DNA of 63,504 nucleotides, the filler included, from Hyphochytrium catenoides (Eukaryota; Protista; Hyphochytriomycota), in NCBI GenBank assembly GCA_900088475.1. It is 10 parts of 10 records of this genome, joined end to end, with 100 filler letters (N's around TTAATTAATTAA, not from the genome) between each part and the next. Parts side by side here need not be neighbours in the genome. Positions count along the whole stretch, not along the records: positions 14,546 to 23,619 come from FLMG01002469.1; 9 more parts are not named here. One strand, 5' to 3'. The notes beneath the pieces were generated by a model. It did no database searches. It saw only the letters and a program-made list of their open reading frames with translations, and was not told the DNA's origin. Shown here one piece after another: positions 14,446 through 25,900 of the stretch. Made by a program: the position numbers and the translations under genes. Positions within the stretch are counted from its first letter, which is position 1; the number at the start of each line of letters is the position of its first letter.

Positions 14446-14559
14446 NNNNNNNNNNNNNNNNNNNNNNNNNNNNNNNNNNNNNNNNNNNNTTAATTAATTA
14501 ANNNNNNNNNNNNNNNNNNNNNNNNNNNNNNNNNNNNNNNNNNNNTCTCTCTCTTTCTC

Positions 14560-14599
<40 letters not shown>

Positions 14600-14657
14600 T
14601 CTCTCTTTCTCTCTCTCTTTCTCCCTTTCTCTCTCTCTCTCTCTCTCTGCCTCCTAG

Positions 14658-15622
14658 ATTGCAGAGCACATTGACAGCGTCGCGCGGCCCCCTCCTGGTG
14701 CTCGGTTGAGCGTCGTCTTCGAGAAACCTTTTGGAAGAGACCTCAATACCGCGCAGGCGCTAGCAGAACTGCTAGCGCGGACACTGAAGGTTGCCTATGT
14801 GTCCTCTCTTTCTTTCTCTCTCTCTCTCTCTCTCTCTCTCCTGCTCTCTCTCCCTCTCTCTCTTTTCCTGTCGGTCAGGTACTCTTCTTCTGGTGTACTG
14901 GTTCCTCCTCTTCCTCCTCCCTTGTTTCGGGACTATGATAAGTTGGTTGATGTCACTCTTATCGGGCGGTTTCTCTTCCTCTCTCTCCCTCTATATCTTT
15001 CTTTGTCTCTCGCTGTTCACTCTCCTGGTTAAACCTATCTCCTCTTTCACGCCCTCAGTACTCTTCCTTCCTTTNNNNNNNNNNNNNNNNNNNNNNNNNN
15101 NNNNNNNNNNNNNNNNNNNNNNNNNNNNNNNNNNNNNNNNNNNNNNNNNNCGCTAGGAGGAAGAGATCTACCGAGTGGACCACTACATGGGCAAGAGAGG
15201 AGTGACAGTGATCGAACAGCTGAGAAACGTACTCTTTCTTTCCTTTCTCTTGCTCTGCCTCTCTCTTTCTTGCTACGTTGTCTTCTTTTTCCTCTCTCTC
15301 TCTCTCTCTCTCTTCCTCTATCTCTGCCGCTCTCTTTGTCTCTCTTTCTCGCTCATCTTTTCCCCGCTGCCTCTGTCTCTCCTTTCTTTTTGTCGTTCTT
15401 TCTACTCTCAGCCATTAAGCGTCAGGCTCAGCGTGTCTCTCTGCCCTCTTCTCTCTCTCTCTCCTTTTCTCTCTCTCTCTCTTCCTTTTTCATCATCGTT
15501 CCGTTCCTCTTGCTTGGAAGCTCATGTCTGCCTTTCCAGGATAATAGGAAGACGCTAGAGAAAGTGCTGAACAATCGAGCCGTCTTAGCCGTAGAGGTAC
15601 CATGCTCCGCTTTCTCTCTTTC

Positions 15623-15653
<31 letters not shown>

Positions 15654-18206
15654 CTCTCTCTCCGCATATGACCCTCTCTTTCTCTCGTGCTCCCTCTGCT
15701 TCTCTCTCTTTTTCTCCCCTTCTCTCTGTGGGAGTGGCCGTGATCGATGGCTCGAGCTCATTGCCTCCCGCTTTGCTTTTTCCGTGTGCCTCTCTCTCCT
15801 CTTTTTCTTTCCATTACGCCGCCCTTTCTCTCGGTCCTTCTTTATCGCCTGTGTACCTCTATTCCCATACAAAATATATCTCTTTCTTCCTTGCGCTCTC
15901 TCTCTCGGTCTCTCTCATATCCGCGTCCTTCTCTCTCTTTCTCTCTCTCTCTCTCTCTCGTATCCGCGTCCTTTTCTCTCTCTCTCCCTCACTTTTCTCT
16001 ATTGCAGGTCGTCATGACGGAGACGGAAGACTGTGCGGGCCGGACGAGGTTCTATGATCACTATGGAGTTATCAGAGATGTTCTACAAGTAAGAGAAACA
16101 GGGAGGACAGGGACAGAGAAAAGAGAGAGAGAGAGAGAGAAAAGACAGAAAAGGGGAAAGAAAGAGAGAGATCTAGCCTGGGCAAAACTCCTCAAGGAGA
16201 CAAACTTTGAGGAGAAGAAGAGAACCTCACAAAGAGGGCGAGGAAGAATGAGACTACATGCCGAGCTGGGGCAGACGTTAGGCTTGCCCAAAATTTTGAG
16301 GAGAGAGAGAGAGAGAGACTCTCTTCGCTTCACTCACTTCTGCCATAACTCCGTCTTCCAATCTCTGTTGTTACGAGTGCGCTCCTCCTCTCTTTTCGTC
16401 TCTCTCCCTCCTGGTCTCCACACTTCATTCATTCTCTTTTTCTCGTAGTCTCTCTCTTTCCTTTCCTCGTGTACTCTCTCTCTCTCTCTCTTACTCTCTC
16501 TCTTTCCTACACACTCTCTCTCTGTTGCCCTCCTTCCAGAATCATTTGACGGAGATGATGGCCATTTCTTTGATGGAGCTCCACGAGGGGGAGACAGAGT
16601 CTAGGACAACCTTCCAGGCGAGTGAGAGAAGAAGAGAGAATATGACAAGAGAGTAGCAAAACCCAGGGAGAGAGAGAACCAACATTTCGCGGACAGAGAG
16701 AGATCGAGATTGAGAGAGAGAGAGAGAAAGAGAGAGAGACAATGAAGGATATTTAAAGAATCAAGAGTAGACAAGAGGGAGCCGCATGTAAGAAAGAGAG
16801 GAGGTTAGCCTTTAAGGAAAATTCCCTGGGAGGAGACAAACAGGAGACTTGGCTCGGCTATTCTCTCACCCTCTCTCTCTCTCTCTCTGTCTCTCTCTGT
16901 CTCTCTCTCTCTCTCTCTCTTCTCTTTCCTCTCTCTCTTTATCCTTTCCCTACACCAGGCCCGGCGGACGGAGCTCTTGAAGCAGATATCGCCAGCTGCA
17001 ATCTCTGATGTCCGTTCGCCTCTCTTCCTATTACCAGTCTCCCTTTCTTCCTCAAAGCCTTCCTTTGCCAACTTTATTCCCTCTCTCTCTCGTTCTCTCT
17101 CTCTCTCTCTCTTCCTTTATCTCTTTTTCTCTCTCTCTCTTCTCTCACACTTATCTCTCTAATGACTCTTTTTATAGTTGGTTTGGGGCCAGTATGCCTC
17201 CTATCCGCAGCACGTTAAGGAAGACCACACTGGACTCTCTTCATCTCTCTCTCTCTCTTCCACGCCAACCGCTGCCTCTCTCCCTCTCTTTCTTCCTCTC
17301 TCTCCCCGATGGAGAGGCGTTCCTGTTATCTTAGCCAGTGCTAAGGCGACAAAGAGGAGAGAGGCGTTTGTGAGGTTTCTCTTCAATAGCTCAGTCGTGA
17401 GAGAGATACTTGGCTCTCCCTCTCTCTCTTCTTTCTCTGTCCAAAGAACTTGCGAGCTCAGGATCAATATCCAGGTGAGCGGTACAAGAGAGAAGAGACA
17501 CTAGGAAAGAGAACATAGGGAGACAAATAAAAGAGAGCAGAGAGGAGAGAAAGAGACAGAGAGGGAGAGAGAGAGAGAGAGAGACAAAGATAGAGGGTGA
17601 GAGAGAGAGAGAGAGAGATTTGGTAGGAGAAGGCATATGGAGGTTGGAGCGAAGTCTAAAAGAGACAGAATGACTGCAGAGAGAGAGAGAATGGGACCAT
17701 GAGGAGAGAGAATAGGAAAGAGAGAGAGGATAATAGTCATTTGGGAGCGCAACTAAGGAAATTCAAGAGGGTGGCGTGGTAAAGAAGAAACCATCACTGA
17801 AGAGACACAAAAGAGACGGACAGGAATAGACAGAGTGTGTGTGTGAGAGAGAGAGAGAAAGAGAGAGAGAGTGAGGGTGTAGAGTCAAGAAGAGAGAGAA
17901 TATGGTCCTTCATCTTCTAAATCTATGTGACTTATCTCTTCTCTGCAGGGCGGAGATTTAGGAGAAGCTATACTCTCCTCGTGTCCCGAGCTTCCTCTCC
18001 GTCCCCCAGAAGGTTGGGAGGAGAAACAAGAAGAGAGAAAGGAAGAGAAACAGAAGAAAGGGAAAGTCTTCAGACCGAAAGAGAAAGGAGAAAATGCCTA
18101 CCGCCAATTGCTTCGACATGCACTGGACAATGACCAAGCGTAAGAAACTTGCAGGCTCTCCTCCTCTCTAATTCGTTTCTTTCTCTCTCGCCCCGTGCCT
18201 TATCTG

Positions 18207-18251
<45 letters not shown>

Positions 18252-19152
18252 CTTTCTTTTTTCTCTTTCTCGGATCTCTTTCTTTATCCCACACTCTCTT
18301 CTCTCTCTCTTCTCTCTCTCTGACTTTCTCTCGCTTGCTAGCTTGTCTCTCTGTCTATATAGCCCTTTCGCTCGCTTTCTCTCTCTCTCTCTCTCTCCCT
18401 CTCTCTCTCTTCGTTCTTTCTCTGTCTCCCTTGATCTCTACACGCCTCTTTTCTCCGTCTTCTCCTTTCCCTTCATCCAACACGCATACCTATCATCTCT
18501 CTCTCTCTCTCTTTGCAGGCTTTTCATGGGTACAGAGGAGCTTCTCTCTTCCTGGAGGATCTGGGACTCTCTTCTGCAAGATATTGAGAAAGTAGGAGAG
18601 ACTGCTCCACCTTCTCTTTACACGGAACACACATCGAAGTTCATGAAGCATGGCGAAGAAGGTGAGTCTCCCTACTTTCTTCCTCTTCTTCTTCTTGTTC
18701 TCTCTCTCTCTCTCCCTCTCTCTCTCTCTCTTTGGGATCTTATCCTCTCGCCACGACTGTTTAGAGTGGCGAGATAGCAGGCTCGCCCTGTCCCACGCCC
18801 TCCGAACTCCTGCTTCGCTTGTTCTTCTCAACCCACTTCTTTATAGCTTCAACGCTTTGCGCTCTCTCTCTCTCTCTCCGTTACCCTCTCTCTTGCGTGC
18901 TCTCTCTCTCTTTTTCTCTTCTGCTTTTCTTCTCTCTGTGACCTTTTCTCTAAGTTTCTCTCAAGCGTTTTGCTCTCCTTATTCTTTAACTCAATAGTCT
19001 TTTCTCTCTCTCTCGCTCTCTCTCTCTTCCTCTCTCTCTCGCCACAACGATGATTAGGCTTCTGGGGTCACACTCTCTCCCCAGATGGAAAACTCCTGAA
19101 GGTGTCCTTGCCCTCAAATGGAAGAAAACAGGGAGAGAAAGAGGAACTTTAG
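14658..19152 (+). CDS. H6PD: Hexose-6-phosphate dehydrogenase-type G6PD, 5'-truncated, 10 exons, C-terminal KEEL
   Basis: IAEHIDSVARPPPGARLSVVFEKPFG, EEEIYRVDHYMGK, GRTRFYDHYGVIRDVLQ|NHLTEMM, GQYASY, TPT..RWRGVPVILASAKA, FMGTEELLSSWRIW; RPxPGAxL, GRTxFY, NHLTE and TPT are H6PD-like rather than cytosolic G6PD-like. Confidence 0.88.
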
Positions 19153-19371
19153 GTCTATTGATAAAGAGAGCAACAGCCTTTGATAAGAATTGCTCTCTCC
19201 CTCTTTCTCTTTCGTTTCTCTCCTCCTCTCTCTTCTTTTCTCTTGCTCTTCCTTGAACTCTGCACAGAAGGGGGCGGGATAAGGAAGAGACTTGCGGAAG
19301 AAACATGGTGCAAACCCTCGATCTCCGGATAAAGGCGACAGAAGATGCTTGACCTGCTCTCCCATCTCTCA

Positions 19372-19409
<38 letters not shown>

Positions 19410-19775
19410 CCCTACGCCCACACTTTCCCCTCTCTTCCTAACGCAAGTGAGCTACAACCGTACTGCTGAAGGGGAAAGAACCATAGGGTATTTTTTCTCT
19501 AGAAAAAGAGAGAGAGAGAGAGAGAAACACGACGGCCAAACCAGCCGTTCTCCCTTGAAAGGGCGCAGCCGCTCAAAGCGAAGAAGATGAAGGAATGGAT
19601 CTCGTCTCTCCTCCATTCGGTGCTACCTCTTGCGCCTCACAGATTCTCCAAGAAGGAGAGCCATCTCTAACGATAAGCGCGTCTTCAGCCGGCAAAGGAA
19701 TGGCTAAGAGAGAGAGGGAGAGAGAGAGAGAGAGAGACGCAAGAGAATGGCTAACGACACATGTCCTTCTTTGGT

Positions 19776-20935
19776 TCAGCTCTTTCTGAAGACGCCGTGC
19801 ACCCAGACTCTTCTTAGTTCTTGCGCTGTCTTCCTGTTCTGCAGCTTCACCGTGCAATACTCGAGCTCTTCCACCTGGAACCCGCAGGACGAGAAGAGAG
19901 AGGAGAGGTCCTCTGGCAAGGGGAGGAGTGACATTGTTAGAGAGAGAGAGAGAGAAAAGAAGGTGTCCCCTGTCCTCTTCCTATGGTGCTCTCCATTATT
20001 TCTGTCTTCCCCTCTCCTTCCGCTCATCTCCATAGTAACACTTAAAATTCCTGCGCGTTTTTCACTCTCCTTCTCCCTCTCTCTGTCTGTCTGTCTCTCT
20101 CTCTCTCTCTTTCTTTCTTTCTTCCTTCTTTTTCTCTCTCTCTCTCTCCACCCCCACGCTCACTGTTGTCTCTTGTCTCCTTTCGCTTCCCTCTTCTTAC
20201 CTAAGGAGAAGAAGTAGGCCAAGGTCCCTTCTCCTCTATAATAAAGGCGATCTGTGAGGCGCCGCTTGGAGCGCATCATTGATAAATCGTACAGTCCTAG
20301 GACGATGAAAGAGAGAAGATGGAGAGAGAGAGAGAGACGTAAGGAGAGATGGGAAGTACACAAGAGAGAAAGAGAGAGAGAGAGAGGGAAAAGAAGAGAG
20401 AGAATGGAACAGAGAGAGACAGAGGAAGACGGAGAGGCATTAGATAGCTCTAGATACCACGGAAAAGAGAAGCAGAGAAACAAAAACAGCTTCTAGACAA
20501 TAAAGAGAGAAGGGAAGCGAGGGTTGGGGATGAAGTAGAGGGAGAGAGAGAAAGAGAGAGAGAAAGAAGGTTCCTTGGCTCAACACTAACGGCAGTCGTA
20601 CCGTAGTCCCTAAAGCAGACCACGCCACCAGCTCGAAGAGCCTTAGGATTGAAAAGACAGAGAGAGAGAGAGGGAGAGAGGAAAGAGAGTGGAAGGAGAG
20701 AAAAGGACAAAGAAGGAAAGACAAGGAATGCGGGAGAAAGCGAGGCAAGTGAGATGAAGCAAAGAGAGAGAAAGAGGGACAGAGAGAGAGAGAAAGAAAT
20801 AGCGAGCGAAATAGAGGACACGGGAGACAGAGAGAGTTAGAAATGCCGTCTTAGGTCCAGTAAACGCCTAACGCAAACGGCGTAGAGCTAGCCTTCTTCA
20901 CGAGTCACTCTCCCTCTTCGCCCAATTCACCTACA

Positions 20936-20967
<32 letters not shown>

Positions 20968-22231
20968 TTTGTGCCTCCATTGCTGACTCTCCCTGACTGT
21001 CTTCTCTCTCTCTCTCTCTTACCGCATGAGCCTGTTTTACTACATGCTTGAATGCTTGGGGATCTATGGCGCTGAGAGTGAAAACTAGGAGAAGACAGTC
21101 GAATGTCTCTCTCTCCACGGAAGGAGGGAGGCGAGAGGAGGCAATGTCCCACACCATGGCTTCACATCGAGAGGCATCGAAGGCGGGAGAGGACTGCCAG
21201 AAGAGAGAGAGAGCAAAAGAGAGAAAGCAAGCGAGAAGAAAGAGAGAGAGAAAAAGAAGGCGAGAAAGAGTATGAAAGAGAGACGGCGCGGGAGAAGAGA
21301 AGGAAAAGCACAGAGAGACAAAACGTGAAAGAGAGGTGGAGAGAGAGAGAGAAACGCTTAGTCTATAGCAGAAACGATGAATCTCGATAAGGGGAAGAAA
21401 GATTCAAACGCAGAGAGTAAAGGAAAGAGACAGCAGGGACAGAACTAAAAAGAAGAGATAAGAACGACAAAGACAACTAAAAATTTGATAGGAAGGAAAC
21501 AGAACGAGAAGAAAGAAAGAGAAAGAGAGAGAGAGAGAGAAAGAAAGAGAGAGAGAGAGCGAGAGAGAGAGAGAAAGGGAGGGGAGAGGGAGGGGGAAGA
21601 GAGAGAGAGAGAGAGACAGGGAAGAGGTGTAGGCTTTACCATAAAGGTCCTAATCGCTTCCTGACTGAGATCTAACGCCTTCGCCTCCAAGTGCGAGTGA
21701 GCCTTCAGAAGCGGGAGGAGCGCCGAACCGTGGCCACACCCGAACTCCAACAACCGCCTCGTCTTCTCTCCCTTGAAAGGAAAGGGGAGGTTGAGTCCTG
21801 CTCTTATCCGTCTCTCTCTTTCTCTTTCTCTCTCTTTCTCTCTCTCTCTCCCTCTCTTACAGTATATTTCTGAACATTTCGCTGACTCTACCGTCTTCCT
21901 CTCATATGCCCGGCACCTATGTCCACGAGTCTCTCTCTTTCTTCCACGAGTCTCTCTCTCTCCTTCTCTCCTTCTCTCTCTCTCTCCCTTGTCGCCCCGT
22001 CTCGTCTCTCTCCTGCCCTCTCCCCCCGTCCTCTCCCTTACCTGTCGCGGTGGTGCCACAAGTTCTGGGAACTCTGTGGCAATATAGCTTCGAGGCTTGT
22101 AAAAGTGGCCTGCCCACGCGAGACAGAGTAAGCATCTACTAGGGCAAACACTGGTAACTGTAAAGAGAGACAGAAGCACAAATAATAGGAAACCCAGGGT
22201 GGAAGAGAAGGAACAACCAAACCAAGAAAGA

Positions 22232-22275
<44 letters not shown>

Positions 22276-22980
22276 CGAGAGAGACAGAGAGAGAGACAGA
22301 GAGAGAGGGGGTGGAAGAGTTAAGACAAAAAGAGAAAGAGGAATGAAAACAATGAGAAAAAGAAGAGAGACAAGTTGAGGCAAGACAATTTAGAGAAATG
22401 GAAAGGGTAGAGTGAAGAGAGAGAGAGAGAGAACACGGCAGACAGAGTGTGGAGTTCGCCGTAATATCTGCTGCCGTAATGAGGGCAGAAAGAGAAAGGC
22501 TAAGAGAAGGCAGAAGGAAAAGGAAAGGAAGAGAAAGAGAGAAAGAGAGAGAAAGTCACAATGCAGACCGCGCCGAGAGAAGAAGAGAGAGAGAGAGAGG
22601 CACAGTAGCGAGCGAGAGAGAGAGAGAGAGGGAAAGAGGCGCACACCCCGTGTCTTCTTATGGAAGTCGTCCCAGTATCTTTCTGCTTGCAAAGAGAACT
22701 CCGATCGAAGATTTTCTCTCTTTTCCTCGTCTTCTTCGTCTCTCTCTCCTCCTCCTGTCATTGAGAGAGACACAGGGAGATCTCCTGGGCTTTCGGAAGA
22801 GAGAGAGAGAGACACCGCTGAAGAGAGAAAGCGCGCCTCCAGTATCTTCTTGCATTCTTCTGCGTGATCTCCCCAGTCAAAGTCCTGAGAGTGATACTGG
22901 ACGGCGGCACCTTTCTCTCTCTTGCTTCTCCTTTCTCTCTCCTCCTCCTGCCCGACGCCAAGCTCTAGAACTGGCGCCAT
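19776..22980 (-). CDS. METTL6: tRNA N3-methylcytidine methyltransferase, METTL2/6/8 (Trm140) family, 7 exons
   Basis: ATG 22980; AERYWDDFHK, HFYKPRSYIATEFPEL, LLEFGCGHGSALLPLL, LLVFTLSAIDP, ALRAGGVVCFRDYG|LYDLSMMR, YYRGEGTLAYFFS, CTVKLQNRK..RRVWVHGVFRKS*. Confidence 0.9.
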
Positions 22981-25900
22981 ACATAGAAACCTCCCCTCTC
23001 TCTCTCCTTCCTCCCGCTTAAAGTGGCTTCTGTTCTCTCTTTCTCTCTTATTCACTTTCTCTCTCTCTCTCTCTGACTCTCTCTCTCTGACTCTCTCTTC
23101 TCAAAGGCGAGCGTATCGGAATGATGAGGGCGTCGCTTCTCGTTTTCCCTTCCAGGTAAGGCCCTGCAGCTCGTCGATCAGAATCAGAAGTCCTTGTCTT
23201 GTCATCGCTCTTCTCTCTCTTTGTTCGTACACAGTAACCTGCTCTCTGTCCTTTCTCTCTCTCTGGCTCTCTCTCTCTCTCTCGCCCTCTCTCCTTTGTC
23301 TCTCTCCTTTTTCTCTCTGTCTTCCTCCTCCCTCACTCTTCCTCTCTCTCTCTCTCTCTTCCTCCCTCTCTCTCTCTCTTCTCTTTCTCTCTCTCTTCTC
23401 TTTCTCTCTCTCTTCCTCCCTCTCTCTCTCTCTTCTCTTTCTCTCTCTCTTCTCTTTCTCTCTCTCTCTTCCTCCCTCTCTCTCTCTCTTCTCTTTCTCT
23501 CTCTCTTCTCTTTCTCCCTCTCTCTTCTCTTTCTCTCTCTCTCTTCTCTTTCTCTCTCTCTCTTCTCTTCTCTCTCTCTCTTCTCTTTCTCTCTCTCTCT
23601 CTCTTTCTCCTCTCTTCTCNNNNNNNNNNNNNNNNNNNNNNNNNNNNNNNNNNNNNNNNNNNNTTAATTAATTAANNNNNNNNNNNNNNNNNNNNNNNNN
23701 NNNNNNNNNNNNNNNNNNNGAGAGAGAGAGAGAAAGAGAGAGAAAGAGATGGGGAGAGAGAGCGAGAGAGAGAAAGGGAAAGGACTAGAGGCCAAGCGAA
23801 ACCCAGAAGGGCCTAATATTTCTACTGTTTTATGGCGTCAACACCGCCCAGATTACTACTAAATTTTATTTACTTGTAATATGTGCTAGCCCTCCAAATT
23901 GCCGTATTACTACTACTAGAGTGGGACAGTTCCCATCCGCCCGGCCTAAAACAGTACTGACCGAATGTTAAACCGGACTTATTTCCTCATAGGCTTGTTA
24001 TCCCTAGGGTATAGACATTCCGAATGAACCAAAGGGTGTCTGAGTATGGTTATTGCCTACATCCATCCGGACGGAAGAGTCCTTTTCCTCCTTTTCCGTC
24101 TCTCTCTTTCTCCTCTCTCTGTCTCCGTCGATTCTGTCTCTCTGTCTTCTGTCTCTCTCTCTTTCTGTCTCTCTGCCTTCTGTCTCTCTGACTTCTGTCT
24201 CGCTGCCTTCTGTCTCTAGCCGTTCTGCTCTAGCCGTTCTGTCTCTCGTTCTTCTGTCTCTCTCCCTTTTCCCTCCTGTGACTCTCTTTCTTTTCTCTCG
24301 TCTTTCCCCAGTTTCTCTTCTGCTTTCCTTCCTTGTCCTGTTGTCCTTTCGACATAGAACTACATCTCTCCTCTCTTCTTCTCTGTACTATCGTCCTTCC
24401 TAGAACTCTCTAGGTCTGTTGCATCATCTCTCTCTCTCTTCTTCTCTCTCTCTCTCTCTCTCTGGTGCTGCTGGGAAGCAGGTGACTCTTCCTCCGGCCT
24501 ACACTGCTCATAATAGTTCCCTCTTCTGTTCACCCTGCTCTCTCCGTTATCCTTATCTTCTATTCCTTCTTCTTCCTTCATTCTCTTTTTCCCCATCGAA
24601 TGCTTCTTCTTCTCTCTTGCAGCGCAGGAGTGAGGAAGTCTCACCTGTTTTCCTTCCTTCAACGAGCATTTTCTTTGATTTTAAATAGTAGTGTCCAGTC
24701 ATCATCATCTTTGCTAAGTCCTCTTTCTTCTCCTCCTCCTTTGCCCTCGTATACTTTTCATTATCTTCTCCTTCTTTCATTAGTTCCTTGCCTTCATGCA
24801 TGATGAAGGATCAACAAGGTCCTCTAGCACGATCATCATTATCTGCACATCTACTAGTGAACTATAGAAGATAACGAACATCCTTCGTTCTTGCTTGTCA
24901 CTCGTCCACTACTGTTGGCTTCAATCACCTAAAGTACACGGACGATCGATCTTACAAAGAAAAAGGCTCGAGCATGCTTCCGCTATCTTGGCACTGAGGT
25001 CGAGAGTCAACCTCCTGTCGTTATCTCCCCGGATGGCCAGGCCCTCAGTAGTGCAAAGAACAAGCAACAAGCAAAGGAGAAGGGTTTCGTGTGAGCTCAA
25101 TACTTTGTCTTTCAGACAGAAGTCTGGGGAATCAAAGAAGAGTGTCTAATGGGCAATCTATCTACCGGAGAAGAGAAAGAAGAGAGACCACCACGGAGAA
25201 GGAGAACGAAGAATAGAAAGTTAAGATGTTTTTTTAGAAGAATGCAATACGAGAGAGAGAGTGTGTGAAGAAGTCAACGAGGACGAGCAGCGCTCTCGTC
25301 CCTCGGAGCCAATCGTCAGCTCTACCCCTCCTTCTCTGCTAGTAGAACAAGGTCGAAGGACAGTCTATTCCTGCCCAGCTAGCGGGAGGTCCCATCCGCC
25401 TGCCAGTCAGTTCCCATCCGATCCCATGGTGGAGTTGAGTTGAAAGAATGACTAGCAAAGAGCACACATAAAGCACCTTTGTTCCTTCCTGTCTTCTTCT
25501 TCTTCTTCTTCTTCTTTGGCTGCGTTGTTTGTTGCTTGCTCCTTATCATCCTCGTCAATGCATCATCAAACTCTTCCAGCGGCTGATTGACAATGTAGAA
25601 GCTCAAAACCCTCGTCCGACAAGACAGGAACTAAGGCTCTCTTTTCTTCTCTTGCATTTGAGCTGGTCACCGTGACTGTCCTGGACAATCCACTCGTACG
25701 AGTTAGCTTAGTATTACCCCGTCTTCCTAGAAGATAAGGGACTCTTTGTCAACGACAGCAAGGACAGCACCAAGAGAAAGAAGGATAAGAACTGTCTGTT
25801 CCTAGAGGAAGAAGGAGCTCTTCGTTACTTGATCCCCTCGATCAGCTGCTGCCTTTATGCAGGCGATGTTGTCTGGGAGCGAGCTCGGTAATGGGGAACG

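Follow-up and report, generated by a model that had tools for sequence, protein, structure and literature searches.

Does the protist Hyphochytrium catenoides (assembly GCA_900088475.1) carry a hexose-6-phosphate dehydrogenase (H6PD) that is directed to the lumen of the endoplasmic reticulum (ER) and has no lactonase domain? No ER-luminal source of NADPH other than H6PD is known in mammals, where 11-beta-hydroxysteroid dehydrogenase 1 is the single client established with confidence and a luminal reductase for glutathione or thioredoxin is not known (PMC9114485). The locus that raises the question occupies positions 14658-19152, on the plus strand, of the 63,504-nt stretch of joined contigs that we analysed (the window), and we examined the 9-kb piece in which it lies (14546-23619; FLMG01002469.1). 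An earlier note on this DNA had read the locus as an H6PD-type dehydrogenase that lacks the lactonase domain and ends in KEEL. Judged by homology, the locus covers two-thirds of a gene, the 3´ part, whose product is a hexose-6-phosphate dehydrogenase of the H6PD type that stands alone, and we consider it quite likely that the enzyme enters the ER, is retrieved by way of KEEL and produces NADPH in the lumen.

Ten exons, mapped by tblastn, MAFFT alignment and a local dehydrogenase hidden Markov model (HMM) that matched seven of them at E values of 1e-16 to 0.03, form an open frame that stays in phase over 1197 nt in all. They encode a 398-residue C-terminal part of a protein of glucose-6-phosphate-dehydrogenase (G6PD) fold, colinear with its homologues. 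The joined protein model was used for alignment and tree building, and database and structure matches were made exon by exon. With hmmscan, Pfam G6PD_N (PF00479) was found on exons 1 and 2 and G6PD_C (PF02781) on exons 4, 7 and 9. Most columns that are at least 90% conserved in the clade described below are identical in the model (66 of 75), and the kept motifs are EKPFG, DHYxGK (here RVDHYMGK), RDxxQNH (RDVLQNH, with the Asp/His dyad), QGG and the terminal E and L. By these matches the predicted protein adopts the G6PD fold, and its active-site signature is intact.

In sequence, the predicted protein also resembles animal H6PD more than canonical G6PD, in agreement with the H6PD-type reading of the earlier note, as opposed to a cytosolic or plastid G6PD. 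Human H6PD (PDB 8em2) was the top solved-structure match for exons 1, 4 and 7, with 27.4, 27.8 and 27 bits versus 18.0, 12.8 and 20 bits for the best G6PD; for exon 7, the corresponding E values were 4.4e-5 and 6e-3. A HMMER scan of 1.84 billion representative proteins with exon 7 returned 26 matches at 36-48% identity, 25 of which look H6PD-like, the exception (P0003) being a low-complexity false match. No canonical or apicomplexan G6PD was among these 26, and neither the protein of the fragment itself nor any close relative was present in this library. Pfam scans of ten of the matches identified seven proteins of ~800 residues with G6PD_N, G6PD_C and Glucosamine_iso; the remaining matches were either bifunctional fragments truncated at the N-terminus or proteins of ~500 residues. 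Every match that was checked proved to be bifunctional or else a stand-alone form bearing a signal and xxEL. The oyster and sponge matches are annotated as "GDH/6PGL endoplasmic bifunctional protein". Closer sequence to H6PD than to G6PD was likewise how Stover et al. recognised H6PD (2011; PMC3148214). Toxoplasma G6PDH1/2, also considered, were dropped; the matches included no apicomplexan or canonical G6PD. As a separate observation, the oyster protein (Saccostrea cucullata XP_062592528.1; P0005) is a full bifunctional H6PD, and the 2011 survey had H6PD absent from all protostomes (PMC3148214).

Phylogenetic analysis assigned the fragment to a defined group. In a maximum-likelihood tree (LG+C20+F+G4; 48 rows, 522 columns; three Zwf proteins of bacteria serving as the root, with no eukaryotic canonical G6PD among the rows), it falls inside a clade of ~500-residue stand-alone H6PD-type enzymes of unicellular eukaryotes, a set to which a word search and a profile search had added members. 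This clade comprises 22 rows with support of 97/95. The choanoflagellate Salpingoeca infusionum branches first, and the model of the fragment is nested within the clade at 98/90, sharing a sub-clade with uncultured environmental eukaryotes. The S. infusionum protein (P0022, EP00049_P026484) comes from a complete transcript, has a signal-like N-terminus and an HQEL end, and scores 342 bits to human H6PD versus 190 to G6PD; EukProt, metagenomes and metatranscriptomes supplied the other members. Each of the 21 complete members carries, N-terminal to the GxxGxLA motif, a stretch of hydrophobic residues (mean Kyte-Doolittle value of at least 2.0 over 10 residues), and all 21 end in xxEL, the C-termini including HEEL, HKEL, HAEL, HTEL, HQEL, HNEL, GKEL, TKEL, SDEL, VDEL, DDEL and AEEL. 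Five further C-terminal fragments end in EL, and none of the 143 bifunctional-length relatives does.

The metazoan bifunctional forms lie outside the stand-alone clade, in the unresolved base of the tree. The approximately unbiased (AU) test did not reject monophyly of the bifunctional forms (p = 0.125), so both a single fusion, with the clade being pre-fusion, and a single fission are possible. Since fusion is absent from canonical G6PDs, parsimony mildly favours a never-fused origin of the clade, the argument made for Monosiga by Stover et al. (PMC3148214).

The predicted tail of the fragment is ...GEKEEL followed by a stop, formed by joining a phase 1 donor at 18661/18662, where G/GTGAGT is a consensus site, to an AG acceptor at 19056-57. 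Direct translation of the resulting last exon (19058-19152) gives exactly GFWGHTLSPDGKLLKVSLPSNGRKQGEKEEL, the peptide reported in the earlier note, with the KEEL codons at 19138-19149 and the stop at 19150-19152. There are 107 AG acceptors within 1.5 kb of the donor, and only exons starting at 19058 and 19085, which share a frame, yield an EL-ending tail; use of 19085 as the alternative would leave the C-terminus identical. The tail length is within the family range, at 41 residues after a conserved Tyr, and a Trp of the tail aligns with a Trp in several relatives. The sole variant seen in the last exon, 19137 G>A, is synonymous. We also examined 1000 dinucleotide shuffles for tails of 10-80 residues, and 9.3% yielded some EL-ending tail and 3.8% a family-like tail. 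By itself, the KEEL frame is weak compared with chance; joined with the clade-wide xxEL, it is good evidence for the predicted end. KEEL conforms to the PROSITE ER-retrieval pattern [KRHQSA]-[DENQ]-E-L, and mammalian ERp72 carries it as its natural signal. Most likely, the protein of this fragment ends, through the predicted splice, in a KEEL ER-retrieval signal, the end first suggested from the DNA.

It is also conceivable that the dehydrogenase gene is real and its true end lies elsewhere, reached by read-through of the 18661 donor (...HGEEGESPYFLPLLLL...VAR and a stop) or by way of another acceptor, with KEEL a chance end of an open reading frame. The splice model was built from genomic DNA, the shuffles give a noticeable chance rate of EL-ending tails, the gene has a stronger acceptor than the one at 19056-57 (gattag/G), and the alignment to sponge H6PD continues a few codons beyond the donor, to 18678. 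However, the remaining candidate tails are all translated CT repeats (SLSLSL...), each of the 26 C-termini known from the clade ends in EL, and both the consensus donor and the family-like tail length fit the predicted exon. We therefore regard a different end as unlikely, though a chance worth keeping in mind.

Several points weigh against reading the locus as a functional gene for an ER-luminal H6PD. All exon junctions were predicted from DNA alone, and the N-terminal ~140-150 residues, which would hold the signal peptide and the NADP-binding GxxGxLA, lie off the contig, upstream of its edge at 14546. A long branch (1.35 changes per site) leads to the protein, and a few conserved residues are altered (G346A, G438N, T457D and P458S). 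Read contigs, which were 150-440 nt pieces from three DNA runs that break at repeats, carried seven non-synonymous and three synonymous variants. The ER-luminal location, the supply of hexose phosphate and the NADPH consumer are presumed, and so are the location and substrate range of every member of the clade.

Much of this would suit a pseudogene, or a paralogue that is not expressed, with a functional gene of the H6PD type at another locus: the long branch, the alteration of some conserved residues, the mostly non-synonymous differences of the second read-contig version and a gene known here through its DNA. Ten exons that are open and in phase over the whole 1197 nt, with canonical splice sites, and the retention of 66 of the 75 conserved columns, all catalytic motifs included, argue in the other direction, and we find a pseudogene or silent paralogue quite improbable. 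The gene is probably real and functional, as far as its reading frame and conserved residues tell. With respect to the variants, two read-contig versions were seen at 15704-15851, 17155-17413 and 19143-19296, with 4-7 differences per ~150-300 nt (K216E, R217K and S228N in exon 7), possibly representing alleles, another strain or a paralogous copy. The second version may thus point to a paralogue or another strain, or may reflect relaxed constraint.

The animal bifunctional form is defined by a C-terminal 6-phosphogluconolactonase (6PGL; PF01182); here, the reading frame is closed by an in-frame stop at 19150, and no such domain was detected. A tblastn search with 10 bifunctional proteins found no 6PGL segment in 14546-23619, and an unfiltered 6PGL HMM search of the six-frame open segments of the same piece gave a best E of 2.1, to irrelevant segments. 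The dehydrogenase HMM used in the parallel search recovered seven exons at 1e-16 to 0.03. Both 6PGL searches came up empty, as expected from the earlier description of a dehydrogenase lacking the lactonase domain. The contig is short and gapped, and the bifunctional form makes up the majority of H6PD-type proteins in the databases, as might be expected if this were a normal bifunctional H6PD with its lactonase exons past the contig or lost to misassembly. Yet 14546-23619 has zero 6PGL signal, an xxEL typical of the family stands just before the in-frame stop, the locus clusters with the stand-alone clade and not with the bifunctional forms, and a probable convergent gene, tentatively placed by a minus-strand open reading frame from ~19776, lies ~620 nt downstream, which together make a missed lactonase half very improbable. 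An ordinary cytosolic or plastid G6PD would have identical Pfam domains, but it was outscored by H6PD in three exons, no canonical G6PD was among the 26 library matches and the gene was placed elsewhere in the tree, leaving this explanation a negligible chance.

On the basis of homology to mammalian H6PD (PMC3148214, PMC9114485) and the clade-wide signals, the enzyme could work as follows. A signal peptide encoded by the missing 5´ exons, like those of its clade mates, would direct co-translational entry into the ER, and the KDEL receptor would retrieve the protein from the Golgi via its C-terminal KEEL. In the lumen, glucose-6-phosphate and possibly other hexose phosphates would be oxidised with conversion of NADP+ to NADPH, which would be used by as yet unnamed luminal reductases. 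Hydrolysis of the lactone product would be spontaneous or the work of another enzyme.

In the 2011 survey, H6PD was confined to animals plus choanoflagellates, with an unfused copy in Monosiga brevicollis, and the survey is silent on signal peptides and KDEL-type ends (Stover et al., 2011; PMC3148214). We found no description in the literature of a stand-alone H6PD architecture that combines a signal with xxEL. The gene studied here is a new, divergent member of a little-known H6PD variant, and we consider the ER signals found across the clade the most useful new point. The genomes that carry the clade range from one that is intron-rich with pyrimidine repeats (the window) to that of a choanoflagellate and to compact, GC-rich, intron-less contigs, found for two members, with G+C at third codon positions (GC3) of 75-95%, unlike the window or known choanoflagellates. 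The clade suggests that ER NADPH production is older than animals. Given that these unicellular eukaryotes have no glucocorticoids and that the clade bears ER entry and retrieval signals, the enzyme would be kept for another luminal NADPH-dependent process. We propose tentatively, at somewhat less than an even chance, that stand-alone, signal-bearing, xxEL H6PD-type enzymes form an old clade across very different unicellular eukaryotes, in which case ER-luminal NADPH would predate animals and steroid metabolism, an ancestral luminal consumer would have existed, and the duplication separating H6PD and G6PD would go back further than the point proposed in 2011, the ancestor of animals and choanoflagellates. 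The clade also bears on the timing both of this duplication and of the lactonase fusion. There is also a practical consequence, since C-terminal epitope tags, such as those on Toxoplasma G6PDHs (PMC9521846), would mask an xxEL signal.

Among known enzymes, vertebrate H6PD (GDH/6PGL, 8em2) is the best solved-structure relative. It shares the dehydrogenase fold and motifs with the fragment and makes NADPH in the ER lumen (PMC3148214, PMC9114485), with an N-terminal signal in its relatives; animal H6PD has the C-terminal 6PGL and no xxEL, whereas the fragment has no lactonase and a predicted KEEL. The unfused choanoflagellate enzymes (Monosiga and S. infusionum P0022) are H6PD-type without 6PGL and show ~35-45% identity to the fragment; P0022 is in the same clade, but the fragment belongs to another sub-clade. 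Canonical cytosolic G6PD (human, PDB 6e08/2bh9) has the same fold, catalytic motifs and reaction but gave lower similarity in every exon tested, is cytosolic and has neither a signal peptide nor a retrieval signal. Other G6PD fusions, namely Plasmodium 6PGL-G6PD, Giardia/Trichomonas G6PD::6PGL and diatom G6PD-6PGDH (PMC3148214), illustrate the labile domain architecture of the same superfamily, but they are independent fusions of canonical G6PD and are neither H6PD-type nor ER-retrieved. Finally, a splice form of Arabidopsis G6PD5 is described at the ER (PMC9478949), which places NADPH-producing pentose-phosphate reactions at the ER in a non-animal; as described there, this is a canonical plant isoform recruited by alternative splicing, not a luminal H6PD-type enzyme with xxEL.

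We also noted other features of the relatives. Two cysteines in the N-terminal domain of the clade, C84 and C89 (P0015 numbering), are nearly invariant and might form a luminal disulfide; the region lies off the contig of the window. On the contig of one member from an uncultured GC-rich eukaryote (P0038; L005 2416-9865), the H6PD-type gene sits in an intron-less, tightly packed stretch beside genes for a monomeric-type isocitrate dehydrogenase, an anoctamin and a GlcNAc-transferase-domain protein. A protein of stand-alone length without an xxEL end (P0010/P0034; 535 aa; ENA contigs of 356-382 kb) groups with sponge-like bifunctional H6PDs, and it probably reflects a truncated gene model and not a second loss of the lactonase.

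The exons, all on the plus strand, are as follows. Exon 1 (14658-14789; IAEHID...VVFEKPFGRD...ARTLK) ends in phase 0 before a GT at 14790, with the 5´ exons off the contig; it matched Pfam G6PD_N at E 5.6e-5 and, by tblastn, homologue residues ~141-202. Exon 2 (15157-15228; EEEIYRVDHYMGKRGVTVIEQLRN), preceded by an AG at 15155-56, has the substrate-binding DHYxGK motif with the invariant D, H, Y, G and K retained, and was found by tblastn and by Pfam G6PD_N (E 5.9e-4). Exon 3 (15540-15596; DNRKTLEKVLNNRAVLAVE) has GT-AG boundaries and is colinear in the MAFFT alignment of the family. Exon 4 (16008-16088; VVMTETEDCAGRTRFYDHYGVIRDVLQ) covers the region of the catalytic Asp and matched Pfam G6PD_C at E 7.1e-5, and exon 5 (16540-16617; NHLTEMM...TTFQ), assigned by tblastn and alignment, carries the catalytic His of QNH. 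Exon 6 (16959-17009; ARRTELLKQISPAAISD) is colinear in the family alignment. Exon 7 (17178-17474; LVWGQYASYPQHV...RWRGVPV...RINIQ), the largest, matched the local HMM at E 1.4e-16. Exon 8 (17949-18139; GGDLGE...NAYRQLLRHALDNDQ-) has a Lys/Glu-rich insert and was assigned by the alignment and by tblastn to three homologues (P0015, P0013 and P0007). The dehydrogenase fold ends with exon 9 (18519-18661; LFMGTEELLSSWRIWDSLL...KFMKHGEE), for which tblastn matches reached 5e-7 and Pfam G6PD_C an E of 0.043, and in which the conserved F, L, W and W are retained; exon 10 (19058-19152) is the predicted last exon discussed above. Taken singly, exon 5, exon 8 and the last exon had no Pfam match, and exons 8 and 9 gave nothing useful in PDB; the support for these exons is the colinear alignment. 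In comparison with the exon model in the earlier note, the last exon and its peptide stood exactly, and the boundaries of exons 6-8 were refined to those given here.

The introns are 168-474 nt long, with 65% pyrimidine, and are GT-AG except for one of the nine, intron 5 (16618-16958), which is GC-AG with the donor CAG/GCGAGT at 16618. As judged from the frame, this GC donor is the only one that holds exon 6 in frame, and read contigs showed zero differences from the assembly across 16509-16689, GC donor included. Intron 1 contains an assembly gap (15075-15150) between exons 1 and 2. By tblastn, the two exons align to adjoining residues of homologues (153-196 and 197-219 of P0022; 158-202 and 203-226 of P0011), and zero residues are missing across their joint in the multiple alignment. 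Since exons 1 and 2 match adjoining residues, the gap is intronic and hides no coding sequence. No read contig from the three DNA runs bridged the gap, and physical continuity of its flanks is therefore presumed.

Downstream of the dehydrogenase gene, at 19776-23055 on the minus strand, we observed a convergent multi-exon gene resembling a METTL2/6/8-type tRNA methyltransferase, with the exon peptides YWDDFHKKT, LLEFGCGHGSALLPLL, FDCLLLVFTLSAIDP and GGVVCFRDYG. Its S-adenosylmethionine-binding exon matched Pfam Methyltransf_23 (4.6e-5) and, in PDB, METTL6 (0.02); a word search with one exon and a PDB search with the presumed last exon were both blank. From the open reading frame, the last exon of this gene may end at ~19776, which would leave the ~620 nt between the genes. 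No Rfam family or tRNA was found in 14546-23619. The piece has ~48% G+C and is rich in (CT)n/(GA)n microsatellites. Introns and spacers consist largely of these repeats and, for each gene, the transcribed strand has them for the most part rich in pyrimidines, an exception being the GA-rich intron 7 of the plus-strand gene. The genome of Physarum polycephalum likewise has pyrimidine-rich repeat introns and repeat-bounded gaps (PMC4758236), a likeness to the window that is one of resemblance only.

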